Positions 1 to 63,248 of a DNA stretch of 64,000 nucleotides are shown in pieces (within the stretch, counting starts at the first letter, position 1; every line of letters begins with the position of its first letter). A program made the translations under genes and the position numbers. The notes beneath the pieces are model-generated. The model made no database searches and had not been told where the DNA came from. It worked only from the letters and a program-made list of their open reading frames with translations. Origin of the DNA: Macrostomum hystrix (taxonomy: Eukaryota; Animalia; Platyhelminthes); NCBI GenBank assembly GCA_950097015.1, contig CATNEN010000012.1:620001-684000 (forward strand), in the 5' to 3' direction.

Positions 1-1627
1 CGGTGTAAAATAAGAATTAGGAAGACATCCAACAGCCTACTGGATAGTTGCCATTATAATAAGAAGGCTATTACCCGTATCTTCTTGCTCCCTCTGCCTC
101 AATCGGGCAAACAAACTGGAGTCTGTCACAACGAGTAAGTCTTTGAGTTGCTTGAGTAAGCGACTCACTAAATCGCTTACTCTTGTCCTCTGCAGCATTT
201 CGCGTATTTCATTTTCGCTGTCCCCCTCCGCTTTCAAAACTCAGGGCGGGCATACGGCTTTCCCGTACGCCTTTAACCCCATATGCGGCTGCTAATTTTC
301 TTGCCTAAGGGAGAGGGAGGGAGGTGGGGTGCAAAAAGGGGTGCGAAGAGCGAAGAGAGAGGACAGACAGATAGGATCACTTCTTATCCGGCTTGGGCTG
401 CTGCCGCCGCACAATCTGAGTTGCGCCAACCCCCTCCGTTCTCTGCCAAAGCCACAACCACCTCCTCAATTTCAGGCTAGGCGGCTATGGCTGGCCTACC
501 CCCCACCACACTTGCCATAGCACAAAGTCGGAGTGCCTCTCCCCCTCTCTGGCCACGACCCCACACACCCCTCATTATCCAGCACAACCCCCTCCCTCTT
601 GTGCGAGCGAGCGTTTTTTGGGCTGAAAGGGAAGGGCCTGAGGCGGGAGAGGCGCCCCATTCCAACTTAAAAATATAAAAACACTGAGACAGAAGGGACA
701 GAAAGACGGAGTCCCCTTCGTATAACCGGCGTCCCCTTCGACACGACAATAAGCATAGGCAGGCAAGGGCTTTTTTAAAGAGACAATTCTCTCTTGTCGA
801 CCGCAAATCGCTCTGTGCAACGAAGTCGAAGGGGACCTTTCTTGATTCTCGCACATCGTCAAGATTAAGTAACAAATCCTGCTTCTCAGTTCTCTAACCT
901 AGAAGAAAGGAAACGATAAACCTTACTCAAATCAGAGGTAAGCAATCCTTGATGCTGTCTTTCATTGATTAACAGTTACAAAATTGCGTAATCTCTCCTC
1001 CTAACTTCATGAGGCAATTCTAACCATTTCGCCAACTCGTTGGCACTCACAACGAGTACCGTACCGTACATCGGTACGCACCCAGTCTCAGGTGTGTACA
1101 TAATGCCCTGACTTTCTCATCGTCAGTGTATACTCTCCACTGTACCCTGTGGTATTGTGGTATTAGCGAAATTGCATTAACGGCATTATTAATATTACTA
1201 AATACTAAATCGCATGTTCCTAAGGATAAGGCTGCTTTTACTCAGAAATCCCATTTACTCGTAACTGGTGGCCCTAAAAATTAGGGCTCCTGTCTTCTTC
1301 CCTCTTATCCCATTGTTCCCATGCTAGGCTTGGAATAGTCCGTGCCGTACCCATAGCTAGCAAACTCACTAGAGATAATCTTATCTAGTGCAGTGCTGGG
1401 AATCAAACTAGGCATTAAAACGGTTCCTATCCCAATTCTCACAGTTCGCTTCCCGTTCCCATTGCCCGCACAACTCCATTGCCCCATGGGGAGGCCGAGT
1501 AGGGGAAGGTGAGGCGTCGGTGGGAGAGCTCCAGAAGCTCGAATTGGGGGGATATTTTTACACTGAAATGGGAAAAATGCCATTTATAAAATCCCCAACT
1601 GTGCCCACTGTTATAGGAGGTAACAAT

Positions 1628-9208: not shown

Positions 9209-10560
9209 ATGGACGCAGGAGGCGAAACTTCTGGTTCCCAACTGGAAGGTACGTAATATCGGTCAATAATTTACTCATTCTACGAAATATAGTTAAATTT
9301 TCATTTTTCACTTCATAATGAATCCACACTCCGCTGCAGCTCTACAGCATGAACATCGCTCTAGCCCAAATGGGCAGGTACCTTGGTGTCATTCTTGACT
9401 ATAGACTGTACTGGTCTTTCACATAAAGGCTAGATACGTACGATGAACAAAATCAGATTTTTGCTGTGTGTAATTGCAACGATAATTGCAATTGCAATTG
9501 TAATTGCAACTGTGATATTCTGTGATACAGGCAGACCTTTAGTAAATTCAGATGAAAAATTCGGGATCATAAACTAAAGTTTTTTATTTTAACCTGCAAT
9601 TTTTCGAACAAAACATTTACTTCTTGCATGACAACATCATATGCATAATCCTAGCTACAATCATGTGTCGCATATTTTGCTCGCACCTATAAAGGGATGA
9701 GAAAGCCATACCTGGAAAGAGATCATGTCTTGGACGAATCCAAACTGAAGTCATTAGATCCCTACAACCTATGGAAGGCCTGGTTCGATCAGGCCTCTCA
9801 AGTTATTAGCGAAATGAAGAGTCCAAATGAGCCGAACCAGATGGTGCTTGCAACATCAACACGGTTAGAAACTGCATGCATTGATTTCTTGCAAGTGCGT
9901 TTTAACGATTAATTACTTAAAAAAAAGAAAAAAATCCGCTTTATTGCTTTCAGTGACGGGAGACCATCGCTGCGCTACTTGCTCCTGAAGGGCCACGATG
10001 AGGGCGGGTTTTACTTCTACACCAATTACAATAGCCGTAAAGGCCAAGAGCTGGTAGGCTGCCGAGGTTATCTGTACAAAGTTATCAGTGCAAGCTCAAA
10101 GCTATATGCACCACAAGTTCTATATTTCTCTTATATACCGAGTCGGATCATCTCGTAGGAGGAAAATCCGAGAGCTTCTATCTGCATGTACTGGCCAGAG
10201 GTGCACCGTATGATCAATATCGAGGGTGACGTCACTAAGGTGACGCCGGAGCGCAGCGACGCTTATTTCAAATCGCGACCTCTAGATAGTCAAATCGGCG
10301 CCGCTGTCAGTCCTCAGAGCAGCGTTGTGGCCTCGCGCGAGACGCTGGAGCTGGCGCGGAGCCAACTGGCTGAGCGCGCCGCAGCCACAGGAGCCAGTTG
10401 CATCGACCGGCCGCAGCATTGGGGCGGCTACAAGCTGGCACCGAGCCAATTCGAATTCTGGCAGGGCCAGCGGGATCGGCTCCACGACAGGCTCCGATTT
10501 CGTCGGCCGTCTGGTGCTGGAAGAACCGGCGGGTGGATCTGCGAGCGGCTGGCGCCGTGA
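9209..10560 (+). CDS. PNPO: Pyridoxine/pyridoxamine 5'-phosphate oxidase, ~236 aa
   Basis: Exons 9209-9248, 9695-9863, 9954-10053, 10159-10560, all phase-consistent. Motifs [68 protein letters not shown]. Confidence 0.95.
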
Positions 10561-19500: not shown

Positions 19501-22433
19501 TGGAATCAAGTAAATTTGAAAAATTATAGTAAATGTGTTCCTAAATAAGACTGTCTTATCTTAGGGCTATTTCAGATAAAAGCAGCCGCTTTGACATGAC
19601 TCATTTGTGTAATTCTAGATATTAGAGTCTGGAATAAAATCACTATGGAGTTCTAGACCATAGAGTCTGGAATAAAAATCACTATAGAGTTCTAGACCCT
19701 AGAGTCTGGAATAAAATCACCATGGAGTTCTAGACCCTAGAGTCTGGAATAAAATCACTATGGAGTTCTAGACCCTAGAGTCTGGAATAAAATCACTATG
19801 GAGTTCTAGACCATAGAGTCTGGAATAAAATCACTATAGAGTTCTAGACCCTAGAGTCTGGAATAAAATCACCATGGAGTTCTAGACCCTAGAGTCTGGA
19901 ATAAAATCACTATGGAGTTCTAGACCCTAGAGTCTGGAATAAAATCACTATAGAGTTCTAGACCCTAGAGTCTGGAATAAAATCACCATGGAGTTCTAGA
20001 CCATAGAATCTGGAATAAAATCACCATGGAGTTCTAGACCATAGAATCTGGAATAAAATCACCATGGAGTTCTAGACCCTAGAGTCTGGAATAAAATCAC
20101 TATGGAGTTCTAGACCCTAGAGTCTGGAATAAAATCACCATGGAGTTCTAGACCCTAGAGTCTGGAATAAAATCACTATGGAGTTCTAGACCCTAGAGTC
20201 TGGAATAAAATCACCATGGAGTTCTAGACCCTAGAGTCTGGAATAAAATCACTATGGAGTTCTAGACCCTAGAGTCTGGAATAAAATCACTATAGAGTTC
20301 TAGACCCTAGAGTCTGGAATAAAATCACCATGGAGTTCTAGACCATAGAATCTGGAATAAAATCACCATGGAGTTCTAGACCATAGAATCTGGAATAAAA
20401 TCACTATGGAGTTCTAGACCCTAGAGTCTGGAATAAAATCACTATGGAGTTCTAGACCCTAGAGTCTGGAATAAAATCACTATGGAGTTCTAGACCCTAG
20501 AGTCTGGAATAAAATCACCATGGAGTTCTAGACCATAGAATCTGGAATAAAATCACCATGGAGTTCTAGACCATAGAATCTGGAATAAAATCACTATGGA
20601 GTTCTAGACCCTAGAGTCTGGAATAAAATCACTATGGAGTTCTAGACCCTAGAGTCTGGAATAAAATCACTATGGAGTTCTAGACCCTAGAGTCTGGAAT
20701 ATCTGGAATAAAATCACCATCGATTGAAACGCCTATACCTAGAACTCTAGGTACTATTGTTCTCTAAACAATAGCTTGCTGGGTAAATCGTGACCCTTAG
20801 CGAATTTAGTGCTAGTTGGTATTGCAATTGGATTGTAAACACTCGCTTGCTTTGAATCTAACACAGATTAAATATTTGATCAGTCCTTAGACTGTTTCTA
20901 TGATCTGAAGTGGCCTTCCAAATAAGGAAATGCAAGCACATAGTGAAGCAACAAAACTCTACGAGAACCGGAAGTTACCTGTATGAAGGCACTGCAAATT
21001 AGTTTTCCTTAGTTGTACATTAGCCTGGCGTGTTGCTAGAAGTTTAGCATGTGCTTAGCTTGATATTCCTACTAAAATAACTGCTTATCAGTGTCAGACG
21101 GTATGGCAATGCAGTGCGGTGATGTAAAAACTGAATTTGTTGTCTATTCTGCTTCCTGTTTAAATGCTTAGATCTTGGACCCTCGATAACTCACTGTTGT
21201 GACTTGAAGTTTCTTTTTAGGTAAACGGCAGGAGTAACCATGTCTGTGCTTTTAAACAAGAATGCCTCGGCATTTATTAAGTTTGTAATATTTGACAGCT
21301 TATTTGCTAAATAATCGATCCTACCTACCTGCAGCTCAACCTGCCAATCAATGCCTACGTTGATGTTCTGGTAACTGCCGCCTGCCGCGGCACAACCCTG
21401 TTCATGCAGCAGCCTGGCCACCCGACCTATCAGCAGCTGGCCAAGATGGACGGCGCCGTGCGTCGGCACTACGCCGGCGGCGAACATTCGTCACCGATTG
21501 CGGTGCCTGCGCTGCCACGGCCCGTGAATCCCGGCGCTGTGTGCGTCGCGCCGAGTAGCGCTGACGGCGGCGTCTGGCATCGGGCCATCATTGCCGACGT
21601 GTTTCCGGAGACTGACACTGTGCTGATGAAATTCTTGGACTGGGGCGGCTACGAACAGATGTCTGTTGGCTCTCTGAGGCAGATTCGGTAAGGCTGAGTC
21701 TGTCTTAATTTATCCTCATTTTCTGATAGTTTCCTAGTTCCTCAAATCAGCCTCTCAATCTTTCCAGATCCTCAAATCAGCCTCTCAATATTCCCAGATC
21801 CTCAAATCACCCTCTCAATCTTCCCAGATCCTCAAACCAGCTCCTCAATCTTCTCAGATCCTCAAATCAGCCCCCCAATCTTCCCAGATCCTCAAATCAG
21901 CCTCTTAATATTCCCAGATCCTCAAATCAGCCCCTCAATTTTCCCAGATCCTTAAATCAACCCACCAATCTTCTCAGATCCTCAAATCAGCCCCTCAATT
22001 TTCCCAGATCCTTAAATCAACCCACCAATCTTCTCAGATCCTCAAATCAGCCCCTCAATATTCCCAGATCCTCAAACGAGCCTAAAAAGTTTCCTAAAAT
22101 CCCATATCCAGCACGGAGATGATGCACCTGCCCTTCCAAGCTGTTGAGGGCCACCTGGCCTACGTGACTCCTCTGCTGCGCCCAGACCAGGACACCGACG
22201 GCCAGCTGGAGTCGCTAAGCGGCCTCATCCAGCGCCGCTTCCTGGCCGGCCGCCGGCTGAAATGCCAGGTGGTGTACTTTAACCACATCGGCCAGCCGTG
22301 CGTGTACCTGTACAGCCGGGAGCCGAACTCGCCGCACTGGCGCTGCGTACAGGAGGACCTGGTCCAGGCTGGCTTGGCCACCTGGTTCTGCATGCCGCGC
22401 ATTCCTCCCCAGCTACCCTCGCCAGCGGCCTAA
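16554..22433 (+). CDS. AKAP1: KH + Tudor domain protein, AKAP1/spoonbill-like
   Basis: Exons 16554-17055, 17460-17587, 21335-21687, 22112-22433, phase-consistent. KH domain HQFLIPNRLGGSMVGTRGRNINYIRAKSG (GxxG loop). Then LFMQQPGHPTYQQL, Tudor WHRAII..MKFLDWGGY, and LRQIR..HLPFQAVE, typical of the AKAP1 C-terminal half. The start codon is uncertain and an upstream exon may exist. Confidence 0.8.
17125..17420. repeat. ~32-33-bp intronic minisatellite (CCCCAGATATTCAGGTTAGTCCTACCAATTAA-like)
   Basis: ~9 tandem copies filling the intron after the KH exon. Confidence 0.85.
19623..20720. repeat. 38-bp intronic minisatellite (TAGAGTCTGGAATAAAATCACTATGGAGTTCTAGACCC)n
   Basis: ~28 tandem copies. Confidence 0.95.
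21740..22078. repeat. ~30-bp intronic minisatellite (TTCCCAGATCCTCAAATCAGCCCCTCAATC-like)
   Basis: ~11 diverged copies filling most of the last AKAP1-like intron. Confidence 0.85.
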
Positions 22434-45779: not shown

Positions 45780-46527
45780 TGTAGGCCACTACAAATCAAA
45801 GACAGCAGTTCAGTTAGTCGCTGGCCTATCGACACCCTTCATTAACAACAGCTGCTTGTTTTTAGCCTTTTGTTACTTCAGGCGGGTCGTGGGAAAGTTT
45901 CCCGAGAGCCGTCAAACAGAGGCCCCTCCCAGACCTGGGGCCCACCAAATTTGGCAGCGGCGGGCAGTGTCTCTCTCACCTCTCTACCAGCACTTCGAAG
46001 GGCTAGAGCGCCCCAAAGTGGAGCCGATAGCTGGTCACGGTTATAAAAAACTATAATTACGCCGATGATTCTATTTTTAGCACAACATTTTTCCATTTAT
46101 ATTTCCACACACACTTTAACCACCGAGGACCACTAAAATAATCACAGATCACGTTTCACGTTTCGCGTGAGAAACGTGAAAATTTCCTATCTCGCTAGTG
46201 CATTTTTGCGTGAAATCTACCTTTAATAAATTTTCCAAGAAACGAAGTGTCCAGTCCTTCTTCTTCTAGTGGTCCTTGAGTTTAACGTGCCCACTGGACA
46301 ATGATTTGTAAAATAACTTCTCTGCGTGTTAGCAGTCGATTGGTGGGGCCTGACAGGCATCGCTATGAATGCAATTTGGCTTCGAGTCGCCTGCCGGTGG
46401 CAGACACTGCGATTGGTCAGCCAAACACTGTTGAATGCTGAAAACTTGTCAAAATTCTTATAGTCGAATTCTACCCCCAATCTGTCCCCAAAGTGAACCG
46501 CGAAATTTGCTCTCAATCAGATCGGTC

Positions 46528-49344
46528 ATGCCTGGCCTAAATCTCTCCCTAGCAACTGTTGCCGAGGACGCCAAGAAACAGTTCACGGACGGCCAGCGGC
46601 TGCTCTACGGCCTGCTGGGCCTCCTGCTGAGCTGCTTCATCACGCTGGTGAACTCCGTAGTTCTGGCCGTGTTCCTGCGCCGCCCGGAGCCGCGGCGGGT
46701 TCCCGGACATCCGCTGATTGTCGGCCTAATGGTCACCTCCGACATCATGATCGGCGCCACGGCTCTGCCCGGCTACCTGGTCGACACACTCTTCGACACC
46801 TGGCCACTGCCCCTGTGGCTATGCGACCTGTGGATCACCTGCGACTACACCAGCACCAATGTCAGCGTGGCCAGCGTCACAGCGGTTGCATTCGACCGTT
46901 TCCTAGCAACCAACTGCGTGTTCGCGCACAAGCGCTGGATGCACCGCGCCAATCAGGCCCGACTCTGCGTGGCCCTCTGGCTGGTCACCGCCGCCCGCAA
47001 CATCGCCACCTTCCCGGTGTGGGTGGCCCTCACTGGCTTCCGCACTCGAACCAACGAGACCCAGCCGACTCGCTGCTCACATCCCATCTATAGGAATCCA
47101 ACGGCGGCGCTGGTGCAACGCACCCTGGCACTGTACATCCCCATCATCCTGCTGGTGTTCTTCTACTCGGCTGTTGTCATGCGCATTCTTCGCAGCACTC
47201 GGGCCGCTAGGCAGGGAGCCGGGCGATCCGACACCCTGCTCAGAACCAGCCAGGGCGGCGCGCGCTCCGAAGGGGTGAGAGCGGCTTGATCAGGGACACC
47301 CATCTGACTGACCTGACACCCATCTGACTGTCCTGACACCCACCTAACTGTCCTGACACCCACCTGTCTGTCCTGACACCCACCTGACTGTCCTGACACC
47401 CACCTGTCTGTCCTGACACCCACCTGACTGTCCTGACACCCACCTGTCTGTCCTGACACCCACCTGTCCGTCCTGACACCCACCTGTCCGTCCTGACACC
47501 CACCTGACTGTCCTGACACCCACCTGTCCGTCCTGACACCCACCTGACTTTCCTGACACCCACATGTCCGTTCTGACATCAACCTGACTGACCAGACACC
47601 CACCTGTCTACCCTGACGTTTCCTGAATGACGGAAAACCTCCCACTGTTTACATAGCATGTCTTCACGTTGATGTGCCAAGTGTACAAAATATCCGATTG
47701 CAGCTAATCCTAAGGTGCGAAGGCTGTGTAATTAGGAGGACTAAATCTGGGCTCTTCATTTTCTTTAAGCTCCATAAAAATCGAAAGTCGGACACTAGTT
47801 TTACAAAAAAGCGAAAGAAAGAAAGTTATCACAGAGAAACCGTAGTGTTCTTTTCGAATCGAAAAAAGGGGAGCTTCAAATCGAGAAACAGCCAGTCACG
47901 CGAGCTCTGTAGATGATAGGGAAAGTCAGGGGAATACAGGGAGGGGATTTCAAGAGACAGCGAGCGAAAGAGAGAAATAGAGCGAGAATGGGGAAGCGCG
48001 AACTGGCAAGCCGCAGTAGACAGACTGAAGCCAACTCTGTCCCCTATCTGAGCGAGGCAAATCCCCAGGGAATCGAGCGGAACTAGGACATTGCGGGGAG
48101 CCGATATACTTCTAAGTTGGGAAGTTTCTCGCCCTAGTGTGTGCCCGAGAATATACTGCCTGCTGCTGCTGCTAGCAAGCTCGTGATTTGCCACGCTCTC
48201 GCTATACCTCTGTGAAGTGAGTAGAGGAGGTTGAGGTTGTACCATTCCCCTGTGGCTTCGTCATCCCAACCCTTTCTTGAAGAACAACAAGCAGCAGAAT
48301 TCTAGAGCCGGGCTAATCTCCGCCCTCCACAATGCTCGGGGAGTGTCTTTGGCCGTCCCAGCCGATTATCGGGGATTATAATGGAAGTTCAAGAGCTCGA
48401 GGACCGCTAGTCTATCAGCCGATGCATGGAGACCGAAATTTCCGAAGCAATTTTTTAAGCTTCTTTTATAGCCGTAATCAGATCTGCTCGGCTGATGAAT
48501 GCCAGTGTGACCACCAATAGGAACTCTAAAAATATGCATAGTCGTATTCTCAGACCTTGTCCAAAATTACTCTAGCAGCAGAACTTCAGGCGGAAGCAGT
48601 ACTAGGAAGCCTCTTTTAAAGGATTCGAGATTTATTGGCCTGTCGAAGACTTCAGAGAATCAGAGCCGACGGCTGCTGGTCTGTTCGTCTTAATTTAAAT
48701 TGCCCTGCTCGTCTGAACAGCAACTCAGAGTATTTCCAGTCAGATACGATTCTAGACTGCTAACAAATGAGTTGAAAACTAATCAGTCAGCTCGACTCAG
48801 ATTCTGCATCATCCCTGATCAGTGAGTTGAGCTCAGCCTCATCACTGCTCAGTGAGTTGAGCTCACCCTGCTCAGCCTCATCACTGCTCAGTGAGTTAAG
48901 CACTTGACTCACGAGTTCTCACCCAAACTTTCCCCCCAGCAGGGTAGTCAGGCCGGGCAGGCGAGGCCGACCCAGTCCGCAGCCGCCGGCGGTCGGTTGA
49001 CCAAGTCCTTCCGCATCGTAACCTGCGTGCTGGTGTCCTTCCTGCTGGCCAACCTGCCGTGGCACGTGCTTGACAACATGATCATGATGCAGCGGACCGA
49101 CATTCGCAAAACTGACTCTGTGTACATCTTGTCCTGGATCATGTGCTACATGAATGCCTTCCTAAATCCGTTTTTCTACCTGTTCATGAACGACAACTAC
49201 AAGCGGGCTCTGCTTGATGCGACTCGGTGTCGCTTTGCGCCTCCCGCTAGGCGGCCCGTTGCCATAGCAACCATTAGCCAGCAGCAGCTCGCCAAGCCTG
49301 CCCCAGCAGCGACTCGAGTTGCTCAGCTTGTCAGCTCAGTGTGA
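46528..49344 (+). CDS. Class A (rhodopsin-like) GPCR, biogenic-amine-receptor-like, ~382 aa
   Basis: Exons 46528-47274 and 48943(or 48940)-49344, phase 0. Seven hydrophobic segments: TM1 LVNSVV; TM2 SDIMIG; ECL1 WPLPLWLCDLW; TM3 CDYTS..AFDRF; TM5 LYIP; TM6 FLLANLPW; TM7 MNAFLNPFFY. The intron falls in ICL3. Confidence 0.9.
47290..47625. repeat. 20-bp intronic minisatellite (GTCCTGACACCCACCTGACT)n
   Basis: ~16 copies directly after the GPCR donor. Confidence 0.9.
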
Positions 49345-49599: not shown

Positions 49600-52500
49600 T
49601 TTACTGATTTCTCTCACAGATTACTCACAGATTCCTCACAGACTAATCACAAATTTCTCACAGAGTCATCACAGATCCATCACAGATTCATCACAGACTA
49701 CGCAGATGACTGTCAGATCCATCACAGATTCATCACAGATGTCACGCAGATGACTTTCAGATTCCTCTCAGATGTCACGCAGATGACTTTCAGATTCCTC
49801 TCAAATGTCACGCAGATGACTTTCAGATTCGTCACAGATGTCACGCAGATGACTTTCAGATTCCTCACAGATGTCACGCAGATGACTTTCAGATTCCTCA
49901 CAGATGTCACGCAGATGACTTTCAGATTCCTCACAGATGTCACGCAGACGACTTTCAGATTCGTCTCAGATGTCACGCAGATGACTTTCAGATTCGTCAC
50001 AGATGTCACGCAGATGACTTTCAGATTCCTCACAGATGTCACGCAGATGACTTTCAGATTCGTCTCAGATGTCACGCAGATGACTGTCAGATTCATCACA
50101 GATGTCACGCAGATGACTTTCAGATTCGTCACAGATGTCACGCAGATGACTTTCAGATTCCTCTCAAATGTCACGCAGATGACTTTCAGATTCCTCACAG
50201 ATGTCACGCAGATGACTTTCAGATTCGTCTCAGATGTCACGCAGATGACTTTCAGATTCATCACAGATGTCACGCAGATGACTTTCAGATTCATCACGGA
50301 TTCATCACAGATTCATCACAGATTCATCACAGGTTCATCAAAGATTCATCACAGATTCATCACAGATTCATCACAGATTTATCACAGGTTCATCACAGAT
50401 TCATCACAGCTGTCACGCAGATGACTTTCAGATTCATCACAGATTCATCACAGATTCATCACAGGTTCATCACAGATTCATCACAGATTCATCACAGATT
50501 CATCACAGATTCATCACAGATTCATCACAGATTCATCACAGATTCATCACAGATTCATCACAGATTCATCACAGATTCATCACAGATTCATCACAGATTC
50601 ATCACAGATTCATCACAGATTCATCACAGATTCATCACAGATTCATCACAGATTCATCACAGATTCATCACAGGTTCATCACAGATTCATCACAGATTCA
50701 TCACAGATTCATCACAGATTCATCACAGATTCATCACAGATTCATCACAGATTCATCACAGATTCATCACAGATTCATCACAGATTCATCACAGATTCAT
50801 CACAGATTCATCACAGATTCATCACAGATTCATCACAGATTCATCACAGATTCATCACAGATTCATCACAGATTCATCACAGATTCATCACAGCTGCCAC
50901 GCAGATGACTTTCAGATTCCTCTGAGATGACACGCAGATGACTTTCAGATTTATCACAGATGTCACGCAGATGACTTTCAGATTCCTCTCAGATGCCACG
51001 CAGATGACTTTCAGATTCCTCTCAGATGCCACGCAGATGACTTTCAGATTCATCTCAGATGTCACGCAGATGACTTTCAGATTCCTCTCAGATGTCACGC
51101 AGATGACTTTCAGATTCATCTCAGATGTCACGCAGATGACTTTCAGATTCCTCTCAGATGTCACGCAGATGACTTTCAGATTCATCTCAGATGTCACGCA
51201 GATGACTTTCAGATTCCTCTCAGATGTCACGCAGATGACTTTCAGATTCCTCTCAGATGTCACGCAGATGACTTTCAGATTCATCTCAGATGTCACGCAG
51301 ATGACTTTCAGATTCCTCTCAGATGCCACGCAGATGACTTTCAGATTCATCTCAGATGCCACGCAGATGACTTTCAGATTCATCACAGATGTCACGCAGA
51401 TGACTGTCAGATTCGTCTCAGATGCCACGCAGATGACTTTCAGATTCATCACAGATGCCACGCAGATGACTTTCAGATTCATCACAGATGCCACGCAGAT
51501 GACTGTCAGATTCGTCACAGATGTCACGCAGATGACTTTCAGATTCATCACAGATGTCACGCAGATGACTTTCAGATTCCTCTCAGATGTCACGCAGATG
51601 ACTTTCAGATTCATCTCAGATGCCACGCAGATGACTTTCAGATTCATCTCAGATGCCACGCAGATGACTTTCAGATTCATCACAGATGTCACGCAGATGA
51701 CTTTCAGATTCGTCACAGATGTCACGCAGATGACTTTCAGATTCATCACAGATGTCACGCAGATGACTTTCAGATTCATCACAGATGTCACGCAGATGAC
51801 TTTCAGATTCCTCTCAGATGCCACGCAGATGACTTTCAGATTCATCACAGATGTCACGCAGATGACTTTCAGATTCCTCTCAGATGTCACGCAGATGACT
51901 TTCAGATTCATCACAGATGTCACGCAGATGACTTTCAGATTCCTCTCAGATGCCACGCAGATGACTTTCAGATTCATCACAGATGTCACGCAGATGACTT
52001 TCAGATTCATAACAGATGTCACGCAGATGACTTTCAGATTCCTCTCAGATGCCACGCAGATGACTTTCAGATTCCTCTCAGATGTCACGCAGATGACTTT
52101 CAGATTCATCACAGATGTCACGCAGATGACTTTCAGATTCCTCTCAGATGTCACGCAGATGACTTTCAGATTCATCACAGATGTCACGCAGATGACTTTC
52201 AGATTCCTCTCAGATGCCACGCAGATGACTTTCAGATTCATCACAGATGTCACGCAGATGACTTTCAGATTCATCACAGATGTCACGCAGATGACTTTCA
52301 GATTCATCTCAGATGTCACGCAGATGACTTTCAGATTCATCTCAGATGTCACGCAGATGACTTTCAGATTCATCACAGATGTCACGCAGATGACTTTCAG
52401 ATTCGTCACAGATGTCACGCAGATGACTTTCAGATTCGTCACAGATGTCACGCAGATGACTTTCAGATACGTCACAGATGTCATGCAGATGACTTTCAGA

Positions 52501-52640
52501 TTCATCACAGATGTCATGCAGATGACTTTCAGATTCGTCACAGATGTCACGCAGATGACTTTCAGATTCGTCACAGATGTCACGCAGATGACTTTCAGAT
52601 TCGTCTCAGATGTCACGCAGATGACTTTCAGATTCGTCAC
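49600..52640. repeat. Compound satellite of 11-bp (CAGATTCATCA)n and a 33-bp higher-order unit, ~3 kb
   Basis: 33-mer blocks at ~49720-50290 and 50890-52640 flank an essentially pure 11-mer block at ~50290-50890. Confidence 0.97.
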
Positions 52641-53184
52641 AGTGATCCGCTGCTATAAACGAATGTAATCCAACAATATTTGAAAAGATTTTGGCAACAA
52701 TTTTAAACTGGCAAGTGTCAGCCCAGGTTGAAAGTTAAATTAACGTTCATTAAGGACAAACAAATTACTATCTTACAATTGGAAACATTTAACCCTTTAT
52801 ACCAAGAATTAAGGCTCATTAAAAGTACACGCAGTTCTATACGTGGAAATAACTGTGCTAGAAAATTATAAAAAATGTGCAGAAGACATATGACCCTTTT
52901 ACGATCACTTATAAATTGCCTTCACTCGGGACTCACAAATTCTGGTCTCCCAGCCAACCACGGCCATGCTAGATGTGCATACATTATGGCTTTGAACATT
53001 TATCTGACTCTTAGGTCGCACTAAAGTCATGCACAGCATTGCCAGCAGTCTTATCATAGCTCGTATTATGGGACAGGAAATGCAACATTTTTCCAGTGCA
53101 GCTTGCCTGTAGAAATGCACAAATGTTTCGATAAATTCACACTCAGCGCCTAGGTTTTGCGTAACAGCAAGATAGAGCTCTAGA

Positions 53185-56100
53185 ATGCTGCTGCTGCTGC
53201 TGCTGCTGCTGCCGCTGGCGCATCTACCGCTACAGATCGCTCCTGATCCTGCCGATTCTGCTAGGAGTTCTGGAGTTCGCATCCTGCTCAATCAGACCTT
53301 CGCAAAGACTCTGTTTATTCTATGTAAGCGGCTGCATCAATAACATTTCCATAATAAACCGATTCTAATGCATCTGGGAAGCTTGATCGATGATGGGCAA
53401 GATGAAAATGGGTGCAGTGAACAAAGAGCTATTTATGCTAAATTATTAGGGAGAAGGGAGAAGGGAGAGAAGAGCAGAGAGGAGAAGGGAGAAAAGAGGA
53501 GAGGGGAGAAGAGATAGAAGAGGAGAGGGAGAATAGAGAGAAGAGGAGAAGGAAGAAGGGAGAGAAGGAGAGAGAAGAAGGGAGAGAAGGGGGAGAGAAG
53601 AAGGGAGAGAAGAGGAGAGGGGAGAACGGAGAGAAGGGGAGATGGGTGGGAAGAGGAGAAGGAGAAGGGAGAGAAAAGTAAAGGGGGAAGAAGGGTAGAA
53701 GGGAGAGGGGAGAAGGGGAGAAGGGGAGAAGGGAGAGGGGAGAAGGGGAGAAGGGGAGAGGGGAGAGGGGAGAAGGGGAGAAGGGAGAGGGGAGAAGGGG
53801 AGAAGGGGAGGGGAGAGAAGTGAGAGGATGCTATATTAGCGCATGTCAGGGGACGATTGTTGTGTCGATCGCATTGCTGAGTTCCCGGTTTACTCAGTCG
53901 GTTTTCTAAATCCCCAGGGGATGTTCGAATTTTCAACCAGCCGGAGTTCATCGAGACAACTTCCGTGCGGCTCCAGATCGACGCTGCCGGTAAGCTGAAT
54001 GTGAACTTCTCGGCATTCAGCCGCGACTGGCAGCTCTCGCTTACCGTCAACGGCTTCCTGCTGCCAAATCCGCTGCTCACGGAGCAACGCAGCGCAGTTG
54101 ACGGGACTCCGCTGAACCTGTCAGCGAGCGACCAGGACGTCTGGCAGCCGCTGCGGGGCCGGATGTACCTGGGCACTGCGGATGCAGGCTCAATGGAACA
54201 GGGCTGGGCTGCTGTGACCCTGATTGGCGATGGGGTGAGGAGCTGATGTCACATCCCGATGACACTGTCACATCCTGATGACACTGTCACATCCCGATGG
54301 CACTGTCACATCCTGATGACACTGTCACATCCTGATGACACTGTCACATCCCGATGACACTGTCACATCCTGATGACACCCTTACATCCCGACACCCTGA
54401 CACCTTTAGATTCGCGCCTACATTGTCACAAACATCAATGACTACATGCTGAACGTGCCGCTAGCGAATCAAACAGCATTGAACAATCTCGATAGTGCCA
54501 TTCGATTCGAAGAAAGAAAGCTCAGCTCTGCTCTGCGGTGAGTGGCGCAGTTTTTTATTCGTCCAGCCTTTTGCTAAATAACATAGTAAAACTAATTGTC
54601 TATTTATCGCGCACAAAGGATTTTCAAACAACTAATTGCTGATTAACAATAGGACTACCAAGCCAGGCCGCGCTGAGGCACAGTGCAAGTTTGTTTATAG
54701 GTAGCTCTTATGGGAAAAATCTGACCTTCGTCCAGAACCGTTGAATATCTCGACTTGATTCTTGTTTCAGAAGATGCGCAACAAAAAGTTGGCCCGTGTT
54801 CTTGAGTTTCATCTGCTTCCGTCGCTCCTATCGGGTGCAGCACAAAAAATAGACATGGGGGTAATTCCCCCCTTGGTAGTTCTACTGTTAAGCAATTATC
54901 ACCTTGACGTTTAACTCACCTTAAAGTGATGCCAACGACACTGAAGACTGGATCAATTTCAGCGGCAACATCAAAAAACAGGCGGCCGGCGGTAACATCA
55001 ATGAGCAGCCAGTTGGCGGCAACATCAGTCGCGCCGCAGGTGGCAATGCGACAATTAACTCCAGCCGGCCCAACCCCCACCTGCCTAGGCGAACCGACTT
55101 TGTCAACCTGGGACCCCTGCCCAAGGTGGCCAAGGGCCGGGAGATTTACGCAGAGTTCGGCGTTATTATCGACCAGGTGCGCATGCTTCATGTACAGCTA
55201 ACATGGAATGCTGCATACTACTATGAGTAGTGAAGTTAGCATTTAGATTTTCATATATTAAATTTCTAGACTTGGCTCGACGCGCTGACACAGGGGTACA
55301 GGATCGACAGGGACTCAGCCCTGCTGTTCACAGCGGAACTGCTCAACTATGTAAAAAGAGATTGTCTTCGAGTACATAACATCTCCTACAGAGTTTTATT
55401 CAATCTCACCTGCGCTAACAAGCACCTTACTAATTTCAGGCTCAGCTGTGGTACCTGCATCCTAGTCTTGGCTATCGCATGTGGCTGAGGCTTAACTATG
55501 TCACTGTTCTAACTGCTTCTCTACGCGTGTACGAAAAAGAGGTCTGGGGCAGACATTTTACCATTTACTTAGTCCTAGAGAGTCTCCAATTCCCATGTCT
55601 CTAATTAGTCCACAAAAGCTTGCTCAATCCTAAAAGAACTTTGAGCAGATCTGCCGCTGGCAAGCCAAGCTAAAGAGGAATGTCAAAAGCGCCTTTGTAA
55701 TCATCTTAACTGGGTGAGTCATTATCTTAACTGGGTGAGTCATTATCTTAACTGGGTGAGTCATTATCTGAACTGGGTGAGTCATTATCTTAACTGGGTG
55801 AGTCATTATCTGAACTGGGTGAGTCATTATCTTAACTGGGTGAGTCATTATCTGAACTGGGTGAGTCATTATCTTAACTGGGTGAGTCATTATCTTAACT
55901 GGGTGAGTCATTATCTTAACTGGGTGAGTCATTATCTGAACTGGGTGAGTCATTATCTTAACTGGGTGAGTCATTATCTTAACTGGGTGAGTCATCATCT
56001 TAACTGGGTGAGTCATTATCTTATCTTGGTTAGTCATCATCTGAACTGGGTGAGTCATTATCTTAACTGGGTGAGTCATCATCTTAACTGGGTGAGTCAT

Positions 56101-59100
56101 TATCTTATCTTGGTTAGTCATCATCTGAACTGGGTGAGTCATCATCTGAACTGGGTGAGTCATTAGATAGATAGATAGATAGTTAGATCCTCCCTGCCGT
56201 CTCGCAGCAACAGGCGGCACTGCAACGGCCTTGGCGGAGTGGCCTTCCCCAGCGAAGCCTGCAACGCGCAGTTGAAGAGCCGCCAGTGCGCCTGCGTCTA
56301 TCACCAACGCCTGCAGCCCAACACGCTAATCAGGGCGATTGCTCACGAGATCGGACACCTGTGAGAGCTGGGTGCGGCTACCTGTTAGTAAAAGAAAAAA
56401 AACAGTAATGTTTCACACCCGTTATATCGTGTTACACCTGTGCTAAAATCTCTCAGCGTCGGTATGCCGGACGACTACGCCGGCCGAAGCAGCCAGCTGT
56501 GTTTCTCTGGCCTCATGCGGTACGGCCTGTACGAGGACAGCGGCTGGTCAACCTGCGCCGTTCAGAACCTAGAGCGGTTTCTGTTGTAAGAAAGTAACTC
56601 AGAAAGAAGAGGCTTGAAATCTGAGACTCACTGAATCCCACTGACTCTCGCTGACTCTCACTGACTCTCGCTGACTCTCACTGAATCTCGCTGACTCTCA
56701 CTGAATCTCGCTGACTCTCACTGACTCTCACTGACTCTCGCTGACTCTCACTGACTCACGCTGACTCTCACTGACTCTCGCTGACTCTCACTGACTCTCG
56801 CTGACTCTCACTGAATCTCGCTGACTCTCACTGAATCTTGCTGACTCTCACTGAATCCCACTGACTCTCGCTGACTCTCACTGACTCTCGCTGACTCTCA
56901 CTGACTCTCGCTGACTCTCACTGAATCTCGCTGACTCTCACTGAATCCCACTGACTCTCGCTGACTCTCACTGAATCTCGCTGACTCTCACTGACTCTCA
57001 CTGACTCTCACTGACTCTCACTGACACTCACTGACTCTCGCTGACTCTCACTGACTCTCACTGACTCTCACTGACTCTCGCTGACTCTCACTGACTCTCA
57101 CTGACTCTCGCTGACTCTCACTGACTCTCGCTGACTCTCACTGACTCTCGCTGACTCTCACTGAATCTCGCTGACTCTCACTGACTCTCACTGACTCTCA
57201 CTGACACTCACTGACTCTCGCTGACTCTCACTGACTCTCACTGACTCTCACTGACTCTCGCTGACTCTCACTGACTCTCACTGACTCTCGCTGACTCTCA
57301 CTGACTCTCGCTGACTCTCACTGACTCTCGCTGACTCTCACTGAATCTCGCTGACTCTCACTGAATCTCGCTGACTCTCACTGAATCCCACTGACTCTCG
57401 CTGACTCTCACTGACTCTCGCTGACTCTCACTGACTCTCGCTGACTCTCACTGAATCTCGCTGACTCTCACTGAATCCCACTGACTCTCGCTGACTCTTA
57501 CTGAATCTCGCTGACTCTCACTGACTCTCACTGACTCTCACTGACTCTCACTGACACTCAGTGACACTCGCTGACACTCACTGCAGCATCGAAGGGAACA
57601 CATGTCTGCATGAGTCCGAGACTCCCAGTCTAGCTGAGTCGCAGTCGCTGCCCCGCCTACCGCAGAACATCGCTTGGCGGGCCAAAGCCTCACAAAGCAG
57701 CACCGCTCATGATGACGAAATGGTGTGGGGAGCGTGGAAGGCCACGGACGGCCACATCTTCGGAGTGCCGCATGAGAATACAGACGGAGATACCAAAAAC
57801 TTGCTGGGTATTGTGCATGAGACTGCACAGGGAATGGGGTAGCTGTCCATGAGGTTTCAGGGTCGTTGTAATATGCGACATGGAATGGGGTGGGTGAGTA
57901 GAAGGTTGGAGTGTGACCGTGTGGTTGGACAGAGAGTGGGGTGGCTGTTCAGGAGGTTGGAGTGTGACCGTGTGGTTGGACAGAGAGTGGGGTGGCTGTT
58001 CAGGAGGTTGGAGTGTGACCGTGTGGTTGGACAGAGAGTGGGGTGGCTGTTCAGGAGGTTGGAGTGTGACAATGTGGTTGGACAGGGAGTGGGGTGGCTG
58101 TTTAGGGGCGAGGGGGGTCAGCGGCTAACGTCGCTGCCTCGCACTCCAAAGGACGCTAGTTCGATTCACCCTTCAGGTCACGATTAATTTCGGTACTTGT
58201 TGGGGGGGTTTGGACAGTAGCGACCGGCGGAGGTGCACCATATTTCGTGCAATCAAAGCTTGAAAAATAGCTTCGCTCCTTCCTTTCTGTGTGCCTGTTC
58301 TGCGTTGTATGAGTTTGTGCGTTGGCGCTGGGGCGTTAGACCTTGCGGGGGGTGGCTGGGGGGCGGGTGTACACCGCCGCGCGCTCATCTGGATTTCCGT
58401 CAGCGCGATTGGATAAAGTGTACACTCGTCACCCGCCCCCCCACCTGACTCCTGAGGACTGATTTCTATCAGCCTTCCGCCCCGCCCCGGCTTGGTCTGC
58501 TCTGTGCGTGTGCGGGCCTGGGGTGAGAGGCACTCCGGCTGCCGCCCCCTTCCCCGCTTGGCTTGCTGCTGTGTGTGTGAGGTGCCTGCTCAGGGGAGGC
58601 GGCGCGATGGGCGGCTCTCGCCTAGTTCGCCGGCCTGGGGGCATGCCGTTCCTGTGTTTGTGCGTCAATTGCCCCAGGCCCCCCTGCAAAGTAAGTAAGT
58701 AAGTAAGGGGTGGCTGTTCAGGAGGTTGGATTGTGGCCGTGTGGTTGGACAGAGAGTGGGGTGGCTGTTCAGGAGGTTGGAGTGTGGCCGTGTGGTTGGA
58801 CAGAGAGTGGGGTGGCTGTTCAGGAGGTTGGAGTGTGGCCGTGTGGTTGGACAGAGAGTGGGGTGGCTGTTCAGGTTGGAGTGTGGCCGTGTGGTTGGAC
58901 AGGGAGTGGGGTGGCTGTTCAGGAGGTTGGAGTGTGGCCGTGTGGTTGGACAGAGAGTGGGGTGGCTGTTCAGGTTGGAGTGTGGCCGTGTGGTTGGACA
59001 GGGAGTGGGGTGGCTGTTCAGGTTGGAGTGTGGCCGTATAGTGACGGGTGGGTAGTCTGAAGGCACTAGATTAATATCAGGAATCCATTCCGCAGGTCAT

Positions 59101-61475
59101 CTTGGCTCGTGCAGTCAGACCAAATTGGAGGTCCGGCCGTGGCTGGTAGTGGAGCTGGACGGCCAATTGGTCTCGACCCTGCCGGTCCTGGTGCACGTGT
59201 ACGGACGAGAAGAGTGCTGTGGTGAGTCAGAGGGTTCGCAACAAACACTTCCCCATTTGCCATATTGAATTGATGCACTGTGTACATATTTCAGAGCATT
59301 CATTGAACAACATTGCGATTGGCGTGGGAAGCCGGAAGCAACCACATCAGCACAAAATTTGCCGCACCTTTGAGAACAGTGAGTCTGGGAGTAAATATTT
59401 AGATAGGTCAGACTGATTGCGATTCGTGACTCCGCACTGCACCAATCAAAATCACCCCTACACCCAACTCCATCCTCCTGCCGCGCAACCCCTTCACCAC
59501 TACCTACATCCACCCCATCCTCCTGCTGCCAACACCTTAACCTCTACCCTACACCCACCCCATCCTCCTGCTGCCAACCACTTCACTACTTCCCTACACC
59601 CGACCCATCCTCCTGTCTCGCAGCCCCTTTACCATTACCCAACACCCACTCCATCCTCCTGCCGCGCAACCAATTCCCCTCTACCCTACACCCACCCCAT
59701 CCTCCTGCTGCCAACCCCTTCACCTCTACCCTATACCATACCCCATCGTCCAAAAAATCAAAACTACTGAACTTTACTCATGCGCAGACGAACACGCTGG
59801 AAAGTACAAGATGCTTTCGCTAAAGTGTCAAAGTGGCCAGTTTTTGTCTATCCAGTCTGTCAGCACCTTCAACACCAGTCTTTCTATCTGCGAAGTCTAC
59901 GTCTTCCAAGGTAAGTACATGACATGCTGCTAGATTTCTAGAGCTAATCATCGAATCCCCATTCGCTCTCCCATACGCGAATTTCAGACGCGCCCCTCGT
60001 GCCGTTCAGCCACGCCGGTCAGACCTGCTTCGATAAGGCTCGCTACTGCGACGAATGGAAAATGGTGGGTGACTGCGACACCCCCAGCCGATACAGCTGC
60101 TCGCGCACCTGCGGCCTCTGCGGACCCTACACGATGACCAGGCCGACAATCGTGAGTGAACAGGCGGTGCCTCTGATCCTGTCTCTTGTGTGTCTCTGAT
60201 CCTGTCTCTTGTGTGTCTCTGATCCTGTCTCCTGATCCTGTCTCTTGTGTGTCTCTGATCCTGTCTCCTGATCCTGTCTCTTGTGTGTCTCTGATCCTGT
60301 CTCCTGATCCTGTCTCTTGTGCCTCTCTGATCCTGTCTCCTGATCCTGTCTCTTGTGTGTCTCTGATCCTGTCTCCTGATCCTGTCTCTTGTGTGTCTCT
60401 GATCCTGTCTCCTGATCCTGTCTCTTGTGTGTCTCTGATCCTGTCTCCTGATCCTGTCTCTTGTGTGTCTCTGATCCTGTCTCCTGATCCTGTCTCTTGT
60501 GTGTCTCTGATCCTGTCTCCTGATCCTGTCTCTTGTGTGTCTCTGATCCTGTCTCCTGATCCTGTCTCTTGTGCCTCTCTGATCCTGTCTCCTGATCCTG
60601 TCTCTTGTGTGTCTCTGATCCTGTCTCCTGATCCTGTCTCTTGTGTGTCTCTGATCCTGTCTCCTGATCCTGTCTCTTGTGCCTCTCTGATCCTGTCTCC
60701 TGATCCTGTCTCTTGTGTGTCTCTGATCCTGTCTCCTGATCCTGTCTCTTGTGTGTCTCTGATCCTGTCTCCTGATCCTGTCTCTTGTGTGTCTCTGATC
60801 CTGTCTCCTGATCCTGTCTCTTGTGCCTCTCTGATCCTGTCTCCTGATCCTGTCTCTTGTGCCTCTCTGATCCTGTCTCCTGATCCTGTCTCTTGTGTGT
60901 CTCTGATCCTGTCTCCTGATCCTGTCTCTTGTGCCTCTCTGATCCTGTCTCCTGATCCTGTCTCTTGTGTGTCTCTGATCCTGTCTCTTGTGTGTCTCTG
61001 ATCCTGTCTCTTGTGTGTCTCTGATCCTGTCTCTTGTGTGTCTCTGATCCTGTCTCCTGTGTGTCTCTGAAAAAGTTTAAACACGTGAGTGACGTATTTG
61101 GGGCGGTTCAATCTTCAGAGGGCTCAGCAGCCGCAGCTCAGTCAGTGCAGGGACAGCCACCGTTACTGCAGATTCTTCGCTGCCAACGGCATGTGCGAAA
61201 AGAAGTGGCTGCACTGCCAGCTGGCCTGCAACCGCTGCGAGGCGGTGCCAACCGCCGCAGCCACCACCGCAGAGATTGCGACAACCAGAACCAGCGCCAC
61301 AGCCACCTCCGAACTAACCACAGTCGAACCCGTAATAGCGACAACAACAGTTGCTATGGCAACAAAACAGACTGAATGCTCGGATACGGATCCGAATTGC
61401 AAGTACTGGACTGAGCATTGTGAAAGGCGACACATCGCCGATGAGTGCTGCAGGAAGTCCTGCGGAACTTGCTGA
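53185..61475 (+). CDS. Secreted reprolysin (M12B, ADAM/ADAMTS-like) metalloprotease with FTP/fucolectin-like domain and three ShKT domains, ~823 aa
   Basis: 15 phase-consistent GT-AG exons (2472 nt): 53185-53323, 53918-54234, 54410-54537, 54927-55176, 55270-55350, 55440-55541, 55637-55713, 56187-56360, 56457-56585, 57587-57807, 59096-59221, 59295-59378, 59788-59910, 59988-60151, 61119-61475. Signal peptide MLLLLLLLPLA; prodomain FSAFSRDWQLSL..N.FLLP. Catalytic domain IYAEFGVIID, LWYLHPSLG, ICRWQ, HEIGHLVGMPDD, Met-turn GLM, WSTC..FL. FTP-like NIA..ASQSST..ATDG..SCSQT..PWLVVEL..REECC..CEVYV. Three 6-Cys ShKT units. Confidence 0.87.
53450..53825. repeat. Polypurine (GA-rich) low-complexity tract
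   Basis: Almost only G and A on the plus strand; lies in intron 1 of the protease gene. Confidence 0.9.
54245..54402. repeat. 19-bp minisatellite (GATGACACTGTCACATCCY)n
   Basis: ~7 copies making up nearly the whole of intron 2 of the protease gene. Confidence 0.88.
55698..56165 (+). repeat. 21-bp minisatellite containing a 5' splice site (AACTGG|GTGAGTCATTATCTT)n
   Basis: ~22 copies; the first copy supplies the end of exon 7 and its donor. Confidence 0.95.
56628..57582. repeat. 10-bp minisatellite (CTGACTCTCA/CTGACTCTCG)n
   Basis: ~95 copies filling intron 9 of the protease gene up to the acceptor at 57586. Confidence 0.95.
57880..59038. repeat. 51-bp minisatellite (GTGTGGTTGGACAGAGAGTGGGGTGGCTGTTCAGGAGGTTGGAGTGTGACC)n, split in two by a SINE-like insertion
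   Basis: Blocks at 57880-58102 and 58707-59038. Confidence 0.92.
58105..58706 (+). mobile_element. tRNA-derived SINE-like element, ~600 bp, (GTAA)4 tail, with target-site duplication
   Basis: The head GGTCAGCGGCTAACG..TGCCTCGCACTCCAAAGG..GTTCGATTC aligns with the element at 31556. A GC-rich body ends in GTAAGTAAGTAAGTAA. GGGGTGGCTGTT is present on both flanks (58091-58102 and 58707-58718). Confidence 0.75.
59455..59745. repeat. Degenerate C-rich repeat (CCCATCCTCCTGC core)
   Basis: ~6-7 diverged copies in intron 12 of the protease gene. Confidence 0.7.
60168..61070. repeat. 36-bp minisatellite (13+23 subunits of CTGATCCTGTCTC[TTGTGTGTCT])
   Basis: ~24 copies filling the last intron of the protease gene; gives the spurious 12-aa periodic ORFs. 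Confidence 0.95.
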
Positions 61476-61714: not shown

Positions 61715-63248
61715 TCCCTGACACTGAGTAGCTGCAGTCCTGACACTTAGTAGCTGGAGTCCTGACACTGAGTAGCTGGAGTCCTGAGACTTAGTAGCTG
61801 GAGTCCTGAGACTTAGTAGCTGGAGTCCTGAGACTTAGTAGCTGGAGTCCTGACACTTAGTAGCTGGAGTCCTGAGACTTAGTAGCTGGAGTCCTGACAC
61901 TGAGTAGCTGGAGTCCTGACACTGAGTAGCTGGAGTCCTGACACTGAGTAGCTGGAGTCCTGACACTTAGTAGCTGGAGTCCTGACACTTAGTAGCTGGA
62001 GTCCTGACACTGAGTAGCTGGAGTCCTGAGACTTAGTAGCTGGAGTCCTGAGACTTAGTAGCTGGAGTCCTGACACTTAGTAGCTGGAGTCCTGAGACTT
62101 AGTAGCTGGAGTCCTGACACTGAGTAGCTGGAGTCCTGACACTGAGTAGCTGGAGTCCTGACACTGAGTAGCTGGAGTCCTGACACTTAGTAGCTGGAGT
62201 CCTGACACTTAGTAGCTGGAGTCCTGACACTTAGTAGCTGGAGTCCTGACACTTAGTAGCTGGAGTCCTGACACTGAGTAGCTGGAGTCCTGACACTTAG
62301 TAGCTGGAGTCCTGACACTTAGTAGCTGGAGTCCTGACACTGAGTACGTAGCTGGAGTCCTGACACTGAGTACGTAGCTGGAGTCCTGACACTGAGTAGC
62401 TGGAGTCCTGACACTGAGTAGCTGGAGTCCTGACACTGAGTAGCTGTAGTCCTGACACTTAGTAGCTGGAGTCCTGACACTGAGTAGCTGGAGTCCTGAC
62501 ACTGAGTAGCTGGAGTCCTGACACTGAGTAGCTGGAGTCCTGACACTTAGTAGCTGGAGTCCTGACACTGAGTAGCTGCAGTCCTGACACTGAGTACGTA
62601 GCTGGAGTCCTGACACTGAGTACGTAGCTGGAGTCCTGACACTGAGTAGCTGGAGTCCTGACACTGAGTAGCTGGAGTCCTGACACTGAGTAGCTGTAGT
62701 CCTGACACTTAGTAGCTGGAGTCCTGACACTGAGTAGCTGGAGTCCTGACACTGAGTAGCTGTAGTCCTGACACTTAGTAGCTGGAGTCCTGACACTGAG
62801 TAGCTGGAGTCCTGACACTGAGTAGCTGGAGTCCTGACACTGAGTAGCTGGAGTCCTGACACTGAGTAGCTGTAGTCCTGACACTTAGTAGCTGGAGTCC
62901 TGACACTGAGTAGCTGGAGTCCTGACACTGAGTAGCTGGAGTCCTGACACTGAGTAGCTGGAGTCCTGACACTTAGTAGCTGGAGTCCTGACACTGAGTA
63001 GCTGCAGTCCTGACACTGAGTACGTAGCTGGAGTCCTGACACTGAGTACGTAGCTGGAGTCCTGACACTGAGTAGCTGGAGTCCTGACACTGAGTAGCTG
63101 GAGTCCTGACACTGAGTAGCTGTAGTCCTGACACTTAGTAGCTGGAGTCCTGACACTTAGTAGCTGGAGTCCTGACACTGAGTAGCTGGAGTCCTGACAC
63201 TGAGTAGCTGGAGTCCTGACACTGAGTAGCTGGAGTCCTGACACTTAG
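61715..63248. repeat. 22-bp minisatellite (AGTAGCTGGAGTCCTGACACTG)n
   Basis: ~68 copies downstream of the protease gene. Confidence 0.95.

Follow-up and report, generated by a model that had tools for sequence, protein, structure and literature searches.

A 64,000-nt stretch of the genome of the flatworm Macrostomum hystrix (contig CATNEN010000012.1, forward-strand positions 620,001 to 684,000; hereafter the window, whose own numbering is used below) contains at positions 53185–61475 a gene of 15 exons on the + strand, which probably encodes a secreted, modular metalloprotease zymogen of the M12B family. In the predicted protein the catalytic domain is followed by a domain resembling the F-type lectins (FTP-like) and by three ShKT domains, which would together serve as exosites. 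According to the same reading, which we hold with moderate confidence, this is a single-copy Macrostomum gene, whose architecture would have been assembled by exon shuffling in the Macrostomum lineage.

Gene model and reading frame

The gene model was rebuilt from the raw sequence by reading all three + frames between positions 53000 and 61700 (Table 1). The reading frame begins with an ATG at position 53185, with an upstream in-frame stop 9 nt away, and ends with a TGA at 61473–61475, which gives a coding length of 2439 nt, or 812 amino acids and the stop codon. All 14 introns have GT...AG borders, with donors that are mostly GTGAGT or GTAAG and with pyrimidine-rich acceptors. The frame is preserved through each of the 14 junctions, and none of the codons formed at the junctions is a stop. 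The encoded domains follow each other in the order signal peptide, pro-region, M12B catalytic domain, FTP-like domain, ShKT1, ShKT2, Thr/Ala-rich linker, and ShKT3. The model is also supported by two database proteins of M. lignano, which cross the junctions of exons 1/2 and 2/3. At the level of sequence, the reconstruction confirmed that the gene model is real and protein-coding, and the match between exons and domains is far beyond chance.

The initial annotation of this locus had described 15 exons spliced in phase between exact start and stop coordinates, and these were recovered in the rebuilt model. Its length of ~823 amino acids was correct as an approximate size, while the exact model has 812, and its remark that the list of open reading frames shows only fragments of the reading frame was also accurate. 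The domain order that it gave agrees with the positions of the catalytic motif in exons 8–9, of the FTP-like domain in exons 10–13, of ShKT1 in exon 14, and of ShKT2, the linker and ShKT3 in exon 15. As for the unusual architecture that it had claimed, the order is supported exon by exon and the combination is unique in this genome, but the M12B assignment is near threshold and the FTP-like assignment is weak.

The same exons could alternatively belong to two genes standing head to tail, one encoding only a protease (exons 1–9) and the other a lectin-like protein with the FTP-like and ShKT domains (exons 10–15), which the model would have merged. Reading through the donor of exon 9 leads at once to Leu-TAA (...ERFLL*, 56583–56590), so that transcripts terminating within the 1001-bp intron 9 could conceivably give a protease-only isoform. 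Such an isoform would be a complete protease lacking the FTP-like and ShKT domains, and the junction of exons 9/10 is not covered by any orthologue, the M. lignano fragments reaching only exons 1–4. However, exon 10 does not contain an in-frame ATG ahead of the FTP-like domain, and therefore it cannot be a first exon; its first Met lies inside the domain, no signal peptide is present, and the phase 2 of exon 9 matches exon 10 exactly. Hence, we consider the division into two genes quite improbable.

Catalytic domain and pro-region

The catalytic domain of about 190 amino acids, approximately residues 266–457, is encoded by the end of exon 4 and by exons 5–9. Exon 8 alone matched the Pfam family Reprolysin_3 with 22.0 bits (E 2.5e-4), just below the cut-off of 22.4, and the families Reprolysin_4 and Reprolysin_5 more weakly, while exon 9 alone did not match any Pfam family. 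In a language-model atlas exon 8 had a feature score of 0.95 to Reprolysin_3 clusters, which serves as a lead. The Pfam match together with this lead supports, near threshold, the assignment of a divergent domain to M12B. On the exons past the catalytic domain Pfam did not match disintegrin, Cys-rich, TSP1 or PLAC modules, and the astacin profile (PF01400; HEXXHXXGFXHE) did not match any exon, the motif being instead HEIGHLVGMPDD.

This zinc motif (HEIGH-L-VGMPDD) extends over the junction of exons 8 and 9. It retains the spacing of the extended M12B consensus HEXXHXXGXXHD and departs from this consensus at the third His, which is replaced by Asp417. In 12 of 12 other metzincin active-site exons sampled from the same genome, for example HELGHNLGSRHD and HEMGHNFGANHD, the third zinc position is occupied by His. 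Met432, located 15 residues past Asp417 in the sequence ..CFSGLMRY.., is a candidate for the Met-turn, a role that is suggested by its position. The sequence HEXXHXXGXXD is the functioning zinc motif of Asp-zincins (PMC3890501), and thus proteolytic activity of the protein is plausible, while its catalytic competence itself can only be inferred, because the third ligand is Asp instead of His. Apart from this shared motif, which is located here in an M12B-like domain of ~190 amino acids, no further sequence relationship to Asp-zincins was found.

The substitution could also mean that the protein is an inactive protease, in which the secreted M12B domain is a dead scaffold, and the FTP-like and ShKT domains provide a binding, adhesive or mucus-component role. 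In agreement with this explanation, the His-to-Asp change stands alone against the 12 sampled metzincin exons, a cysteine switch is missing, and neither an R-x-K/R-R sequence nor another clear furin site was found. Additionally, the adhesive mucus of a limpet contains a reprolysin-domain protein without HEXXH, which carries Ser-Pro-Thr-Thr repeats (PMC7333891). On the other hand, HEXXH with its catalytic Glu, the Gly turn and the Met 15 residues past the Asp are all intact here, and the same ligand set is functional in Asp-zincins. The long pro-region with its invariant 22-amino-acid segment also suggests that latency still needs to be controlled. For these reasons a pseudo-protease appears unlikely, and a working M12B-type enzyme is the reading that we prefer.

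The pro-region of about 240 amino acids contains many N-x-S/T sequons and a Gly/Asn repeat. From the signal peptide to the catalytic domain there is not a single Cys, and therefore the cysteine switch of ADAM proteases is impossible. Neither Pep_M12B_propep nor any other Pfam family matched exons 2–4 or the corresponding M. lignano fragments (E up to 10), and these exons are named pro-region by their position in the predicted protein. The first 22 amino acids of exon 3 (54410–54475, IRAYIVTNINDYMLNVPLANQT) are identical to residues 92–113 of the M. lignano protein P0001, in contrast to the adjoining exon 2, which is only 45% identical. This difference indicates a constrained segment of the pro-region, and the identical block may be the inhibitory segment of a pro-region devoid of Cys. 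The repeat part of exon 4 aligns with GGEIKQ repeats of P0001.

The comparison with M12B proteases, which include ADAM, ADAMTS, snake-venom metalloproteinases and secreted members from invertebrates, for example C. elegans MIG-17, showed that the secreted zymogen layout with a long pro-region is shared, as are the matches of exon 8 to Reprolysin_3/4/5, HEXXHXXG, the later Met, and a Cys-containing C-terminal segment, ending here ...WSTCAVQNLERFL. The protein differs from them by the Asp as third ligand, by the Cys-free pro-region and by the lack of a cysteine switch. It also differs from ADAM and ADAMTS proteins in that the catalytic domain is followed by the FTP-like and three ShKT domains, and not by disintegrin, Cys-rich or TSP1 modules.

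Two other M12B-like copies were noted in this genome, at C10:1955273-1955566 and C10:1969989-1970282. Each has HEIGHR followed by an immediate stop (one TGA inside the match), which could mean that the copies are broken paralogues or that the motif is directly followed by an intron.

FTP-like and ShKT domains

The FTP-like domain of about 158 amino acids, approximately residues 482–639 and presumably a beta-sandwich, is divided among four exons (10–13). The window contains 1889 open stretches in six frames, all of which were searched with a profile constructed from 19 of the genome's own FTP domains. The two top stretches were exon 11 (profile positions 36–73, E 0.014) and exon 13 (86–128, E 0.025; E 0.009 when the exact exon was used), which are collinear with the profile, and exon 12 aligned weakly, also in a collinear way, with positions 75–85. 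In the PDB search the best match of exon 11 was the F-type lectin FBP32 of striped bass (3cqo) with a non-significant E of 0.38, while exons 10 and 13 gave chance matches only. For exon 10 the nearest named clusters in the atlas were F5_F8_type_C_2/fucolectin at 0.86, which is a lead only. The motifs shared with F-type lectins (eel agglutinin, FBP32; PF22633), which are ..QSS..DG.., SC.xT..PW, R-x-[DE]-CC and CEV.VF, are collinear as well. These weak but collinear data suggest an FTP/F-type-lectin-like identity of the domain. The FTP domains sampled from the same genome are each contained in one open frame, unlike the domain described here. F-type lectin domains frequently occur in large proteins that are composed of multiple domains and possess catalytic activities (PMC8878817).

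The weak resemblance to lectins does not extend to the residues of the fucose site. The fucose-binding motif of F-type lectins such as eel agglutinin, His-X(~26)-Arg-X-Asp-X4-Arg/Lys with the triad His/Arg/Arg, is replaced at the aligned positions by Gln (SCSQT), Arg-Glu-Glu (YGREECC), and Ser (EHS), so that the fucose His is changed to Gln and the second Arg to Ser. Many FTP domains of the same genome carry CTHT and NRQDCC..RL. Because of the degenerate triad, fucose is probably not the ligand, and fucose targeting is doubtful. The glycan-targeted protease that the initial annotation had envisaged is thus weakened as regards fucose, while other ligands are not affected; its Thr-rich linker between the last two ShKT domains was, however, well founded, as shown by the composition of exon 15, in which the linker of 46 amino acids holds 15 Thr and 11 Ala among the 45 residues counted.

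The three ShKT domains are well supported by the sequence comparisons. Exon 15, encoding ShKT2 and ShKT3, matched the Pfam family ShK in two stretches with 28.1 bits (E 3e-6; cut-off 20.9), and exon 14, encoding ShKT1, with 19.6 bits (E 0.0014; the same cut-off). The Cys pattern of exon 14 is C-x6-C-x8-C-x7-C-x3-C-x2-C. Its best PDB match (E 0.0044) was to 2mcr, an ShK domain that belongs to a zinc metalloproteinase, and the toxin domain of MMP23 (2k72) was listed too, while the PDB search with exon 15 found nothing. The genome scan with PF01549 detected all three ShKT positions, and the Cys spacing is canonical in each of them.

ShKT modules have been described with astacin and CAP domains (PMC6409789). 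The astacin-ShKT proteases (M12A) of cnidarians, nematodes, molluscs and flatworms, and the human MMP23 (M10), share with the protein described here a metzincin domain followed by at least one C-terminal ShKT module. It differs from both in having a catalytic domain of the M12B type, which is neither astacin nor matrixin, and an FTP-like domain that precedes the ShKT domains. In full-text literature searches no paper describing ShKT joined to M12B was found, the partners of ShKT there being astacin, CAP and MMP23. Neither reprolysin nor fucolectin turned up in connection with Macrostomum.

Genomic distribution, and proposed origin and mechanism

The genome was searched as a 220-Mb assembly of 42 contigs. 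When paralogues of exons 2, 3, 8, 9 and 10 were sought in the window and throughout the genome, only the gene itself was returned, which is thus present as a single copy. The genome contains 17 ShK hits, three of which belong to this gene, and 34–45 other M12B hits, none of which is located close to ShK or strong FTP hits; hence, the combination is unique within this genome. The FTP-type family F5_F8_type_C_2 (PF22633) has at least 150 matches in the genome, mostly whole domains in single open frames and in tandem arrays (Table 1).

Apart from three repetitive proteins, which were spurious, an exhaustive HMMER protein search with exon 2 retrieved two fragmentary M. lignano predictions, P0001 and P0004. 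Both share 45% identity with exon 2 over 94 amino acids. P0004 extends from the 3′ half of exon 1 (63% identical), through the Trp junction codon, into exon 2, while P0001 extends from exon 2 through exon 3 into exon 4. These fragments, which together cover exons 1–4, are the only cross-species relatives that were found, and the catalytic, FTP-like and ShKT parts did not have a counterpart in another species in the protein searches.

Besides the possible inactivity of the protease and the missing furin site discussed above, several results weigh against the reading of the gene as a modular M12B zymogen. The domain searches were run exon by exon, so that every domain call rests on single exons, and such searching is less sensitive because the catalytic domain spans six exons and the FTP-like domain four. 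The genome scan with the classical Reprolysin profile (PF01421) missed the locus, a local profile of the other M12B genes of the same genome did not recognize exons 8 and 9, and each of these two exons alone had no matches in the PDB sequence search. With the exact exons (E up to 10), Pfam yielded nothing beyond Reprolysin_3/4/5 on exon 8 and ShK on exons 14 and 15; it was silent on the single FTP exons, and exon 10 had no significant profile match. In word-index searches, using an index without full-length proteins, exons 2 and 15 had no relatives, and P0001 retrieved only itself and P0004. Finally, neither AATAAA nor ATTAAA was found within ~800 nt 3′ of the stop codon.

Domains so divergent that standard profiles barely detect them, the lack of a canonical poly(A) hexamer, and the minisatellites, which fill many introns (arrays are present in introns 1, 2, 7, 9, 10, 12 and 14), could also be expected of a decaying or unexpressed gene copy, the frame of which is open by chance. 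This explanation is, however, very hard to reconcile with 812 codons over 15 exons without a stop or a frameshift, with 14 intact pairs of splice sites, with an M. lignano orthologue containing the invariant 22-amino-acid block, and with the retention of all 19 ShKT cysteines, seven of them in ShKT3. We therefore consider decay highly improbable.

Repeats are abundant both within and around the gene. A 21-bp minisatellite, ATCTTAACTGGGTGAGTCATT, is present in 22 copies at 55703–56165 (intron 7), starting 11 nt inside the end of exon 7. As a consequence of this start, the true donor GG|GTGAGT is the first unit, and 21 identical donor-like sites follow downstream; because each unit contains a TGA in the frame of exon 7, the downstream copies would not lengthen the protein. 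The gene is flanked by minisatellites at 50000–52642 (33 bp x 80, upstream) and 61717–63245 (22 bp x 68, downstream), and the upstream 33-bp array is open on both strands, which creates sham open reading frames of 576–587 amino acids. A tandem gene cluster was considered and rejected, because the neighbors are unrelated genes, namely a 7TM receptor, PNPO, a Tudor-domain exon and a C2H2 zinc-finger frame (Table 1).

Table 1. Exons of the gene, neighboring genes in the window, and examples of FTP-type arrays elsewhere in the genome
Feature	Position	Strand	Content
Exon 1	53185-53323	+	ATG, poly-Leu signal peptide MLLLLLLLLPLAHLPLQIA... (~20 aa), start of pro-region; end phase 1; donor AT|GTAAGC
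Exon 2	53918-54234	+	Pro-region, 105 full codons, Cys-free
Exon 3	54410-54537	+	Pro-region; acceptor TTTAG, donor CG|GTGAGT
Exon 4	54927-55176	+	Pro-region Gly/Asn-rich repeat, dibasic PRR, predicted first catalytic-domain strand REIYAEFGVIIDQ
Exon 5	55270-55350	+	Catalytic domain, 27 aa; phase 0/0; acceptor TCTAG, donor GTAAAA; assigned from position and order only
Exon 6	55440-55541	+	Catalytic domain, 34 aa; phase 0/0; acceptor TTTCAG; assigned from position and order only
Exon 7	55649-55713	+	Catalytic domain (ICRWQAKL...VIILTG)
Exon 8	56208-56360	+	Catalytic core, ends HEIGH (56344-56358: His407, Glu408, His411)
Exon 9	56457-56585	+	VGMPDD, Asp417 (56470-56472), Met432 (56515-56517), C-terminal part of catalytic domain WSTCAVQNLERFL
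Exon 10	57587-57807	+	26-aa linker, then start of FTP-like domain from 57666 (NIAWRAKASQSS...ATDG)
Exon 11	59096-59221	+	FTP-like core (GSCSQT...RPWLVVEL...YGREECC)
Exon 12	59295-59378	+	FTP-like (HSLNNIAIGVG...C)
Exon 13	59788-59910	+	FTP-like C-terminus (...SLSICEVYVFQ)
Exon 14	59988-60151	+	ShKT1, Cys653-Cys684 (60026-60121)
Exon 15	61119-61475	+	ShKT2 (61146-61238), Thr/Ala-rich linker (61239-61376), ShKT3 (61377-61472), TGA
635-aa open frame	1412-3316	+	C2H2 zinc finger
PNPO	10159-10557	+	Pyridoxamine-phosphate oxidase
Tudor-domain exon	21311-21688	+	
7TM receptor	46435-47286 and 48895-49341	+	Rhodopsin-type, just upstream of the gene
FTP-type tandem arrays	C1:8455116-8498207, C1:6621171-6637049, C3:4453030-4462596		Examples

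Exon shuffling in the Macrostomum lineage is the most likely origin of the architecture, because the borders of the domains coincide with the borders of exons, and the genome contains massively amplified FTP-type domains. To judge from the predicted protein, the enzyme would be secreted with the pro-region attached, which would more likely block the active site via its invariant segment IRAYIVTNINDYMLNVPL. Once the pro-region has been removed, Glu408 would act as the general base in peptide-bond cleavage, and His407, His411 and Asp417 would coordinate the zinc, as in the HEXXHXXGXXD of Asp-zincins, with Met432 as the candidate Met-turn. Carried on an O-glycosylated stalk, the three disulfide-knotted ShKT domains would, like the FTP-like module, be exosites directing the enzyme to an extracellular ligand or to the matrix, with fucose itself probably not being the ligand. 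A bolder version of this mechanism has in our view a rather small chance of being correct. It would assume a working M12B enzyme with Asp as third ligand and a Met-turn, which is kept latent by the Cys-free pro-region via NINDYMLNVPL (perhaps as an aspartate switch) and is steered by a lectin-fold module that no longer binds fucose and by three ShKT domains, as a secreted effector specific to Macrostomum. If this version is true, it would be the third independent pairing of a metzincin with ShKT, after astacins and MMP23.

The protein joins three ordinary extracellular modules of known families in a new combination, which is rare and restricted to its lineage. All three modules occur widely in secreted proteins of animals, and exon shuffling among them can be expected; the protein therefore does not represent a novel type of system. 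Macrostomum serves in the laboratory as a model for studies of adhesion, regeneration and reproduction. The recurring pairing of metzincins with ShKT, seen in astacins and MMP23, would now also include the adamalysin family, and a domain of the lectin fold, which is hugely amplified in this genome, would have taken on the probable role of a protease exosite. A natural M12B scaffold with Asp as third ligand and without a cysteine switch would also probe the limits within which the zinc site and the control of latency can drift.

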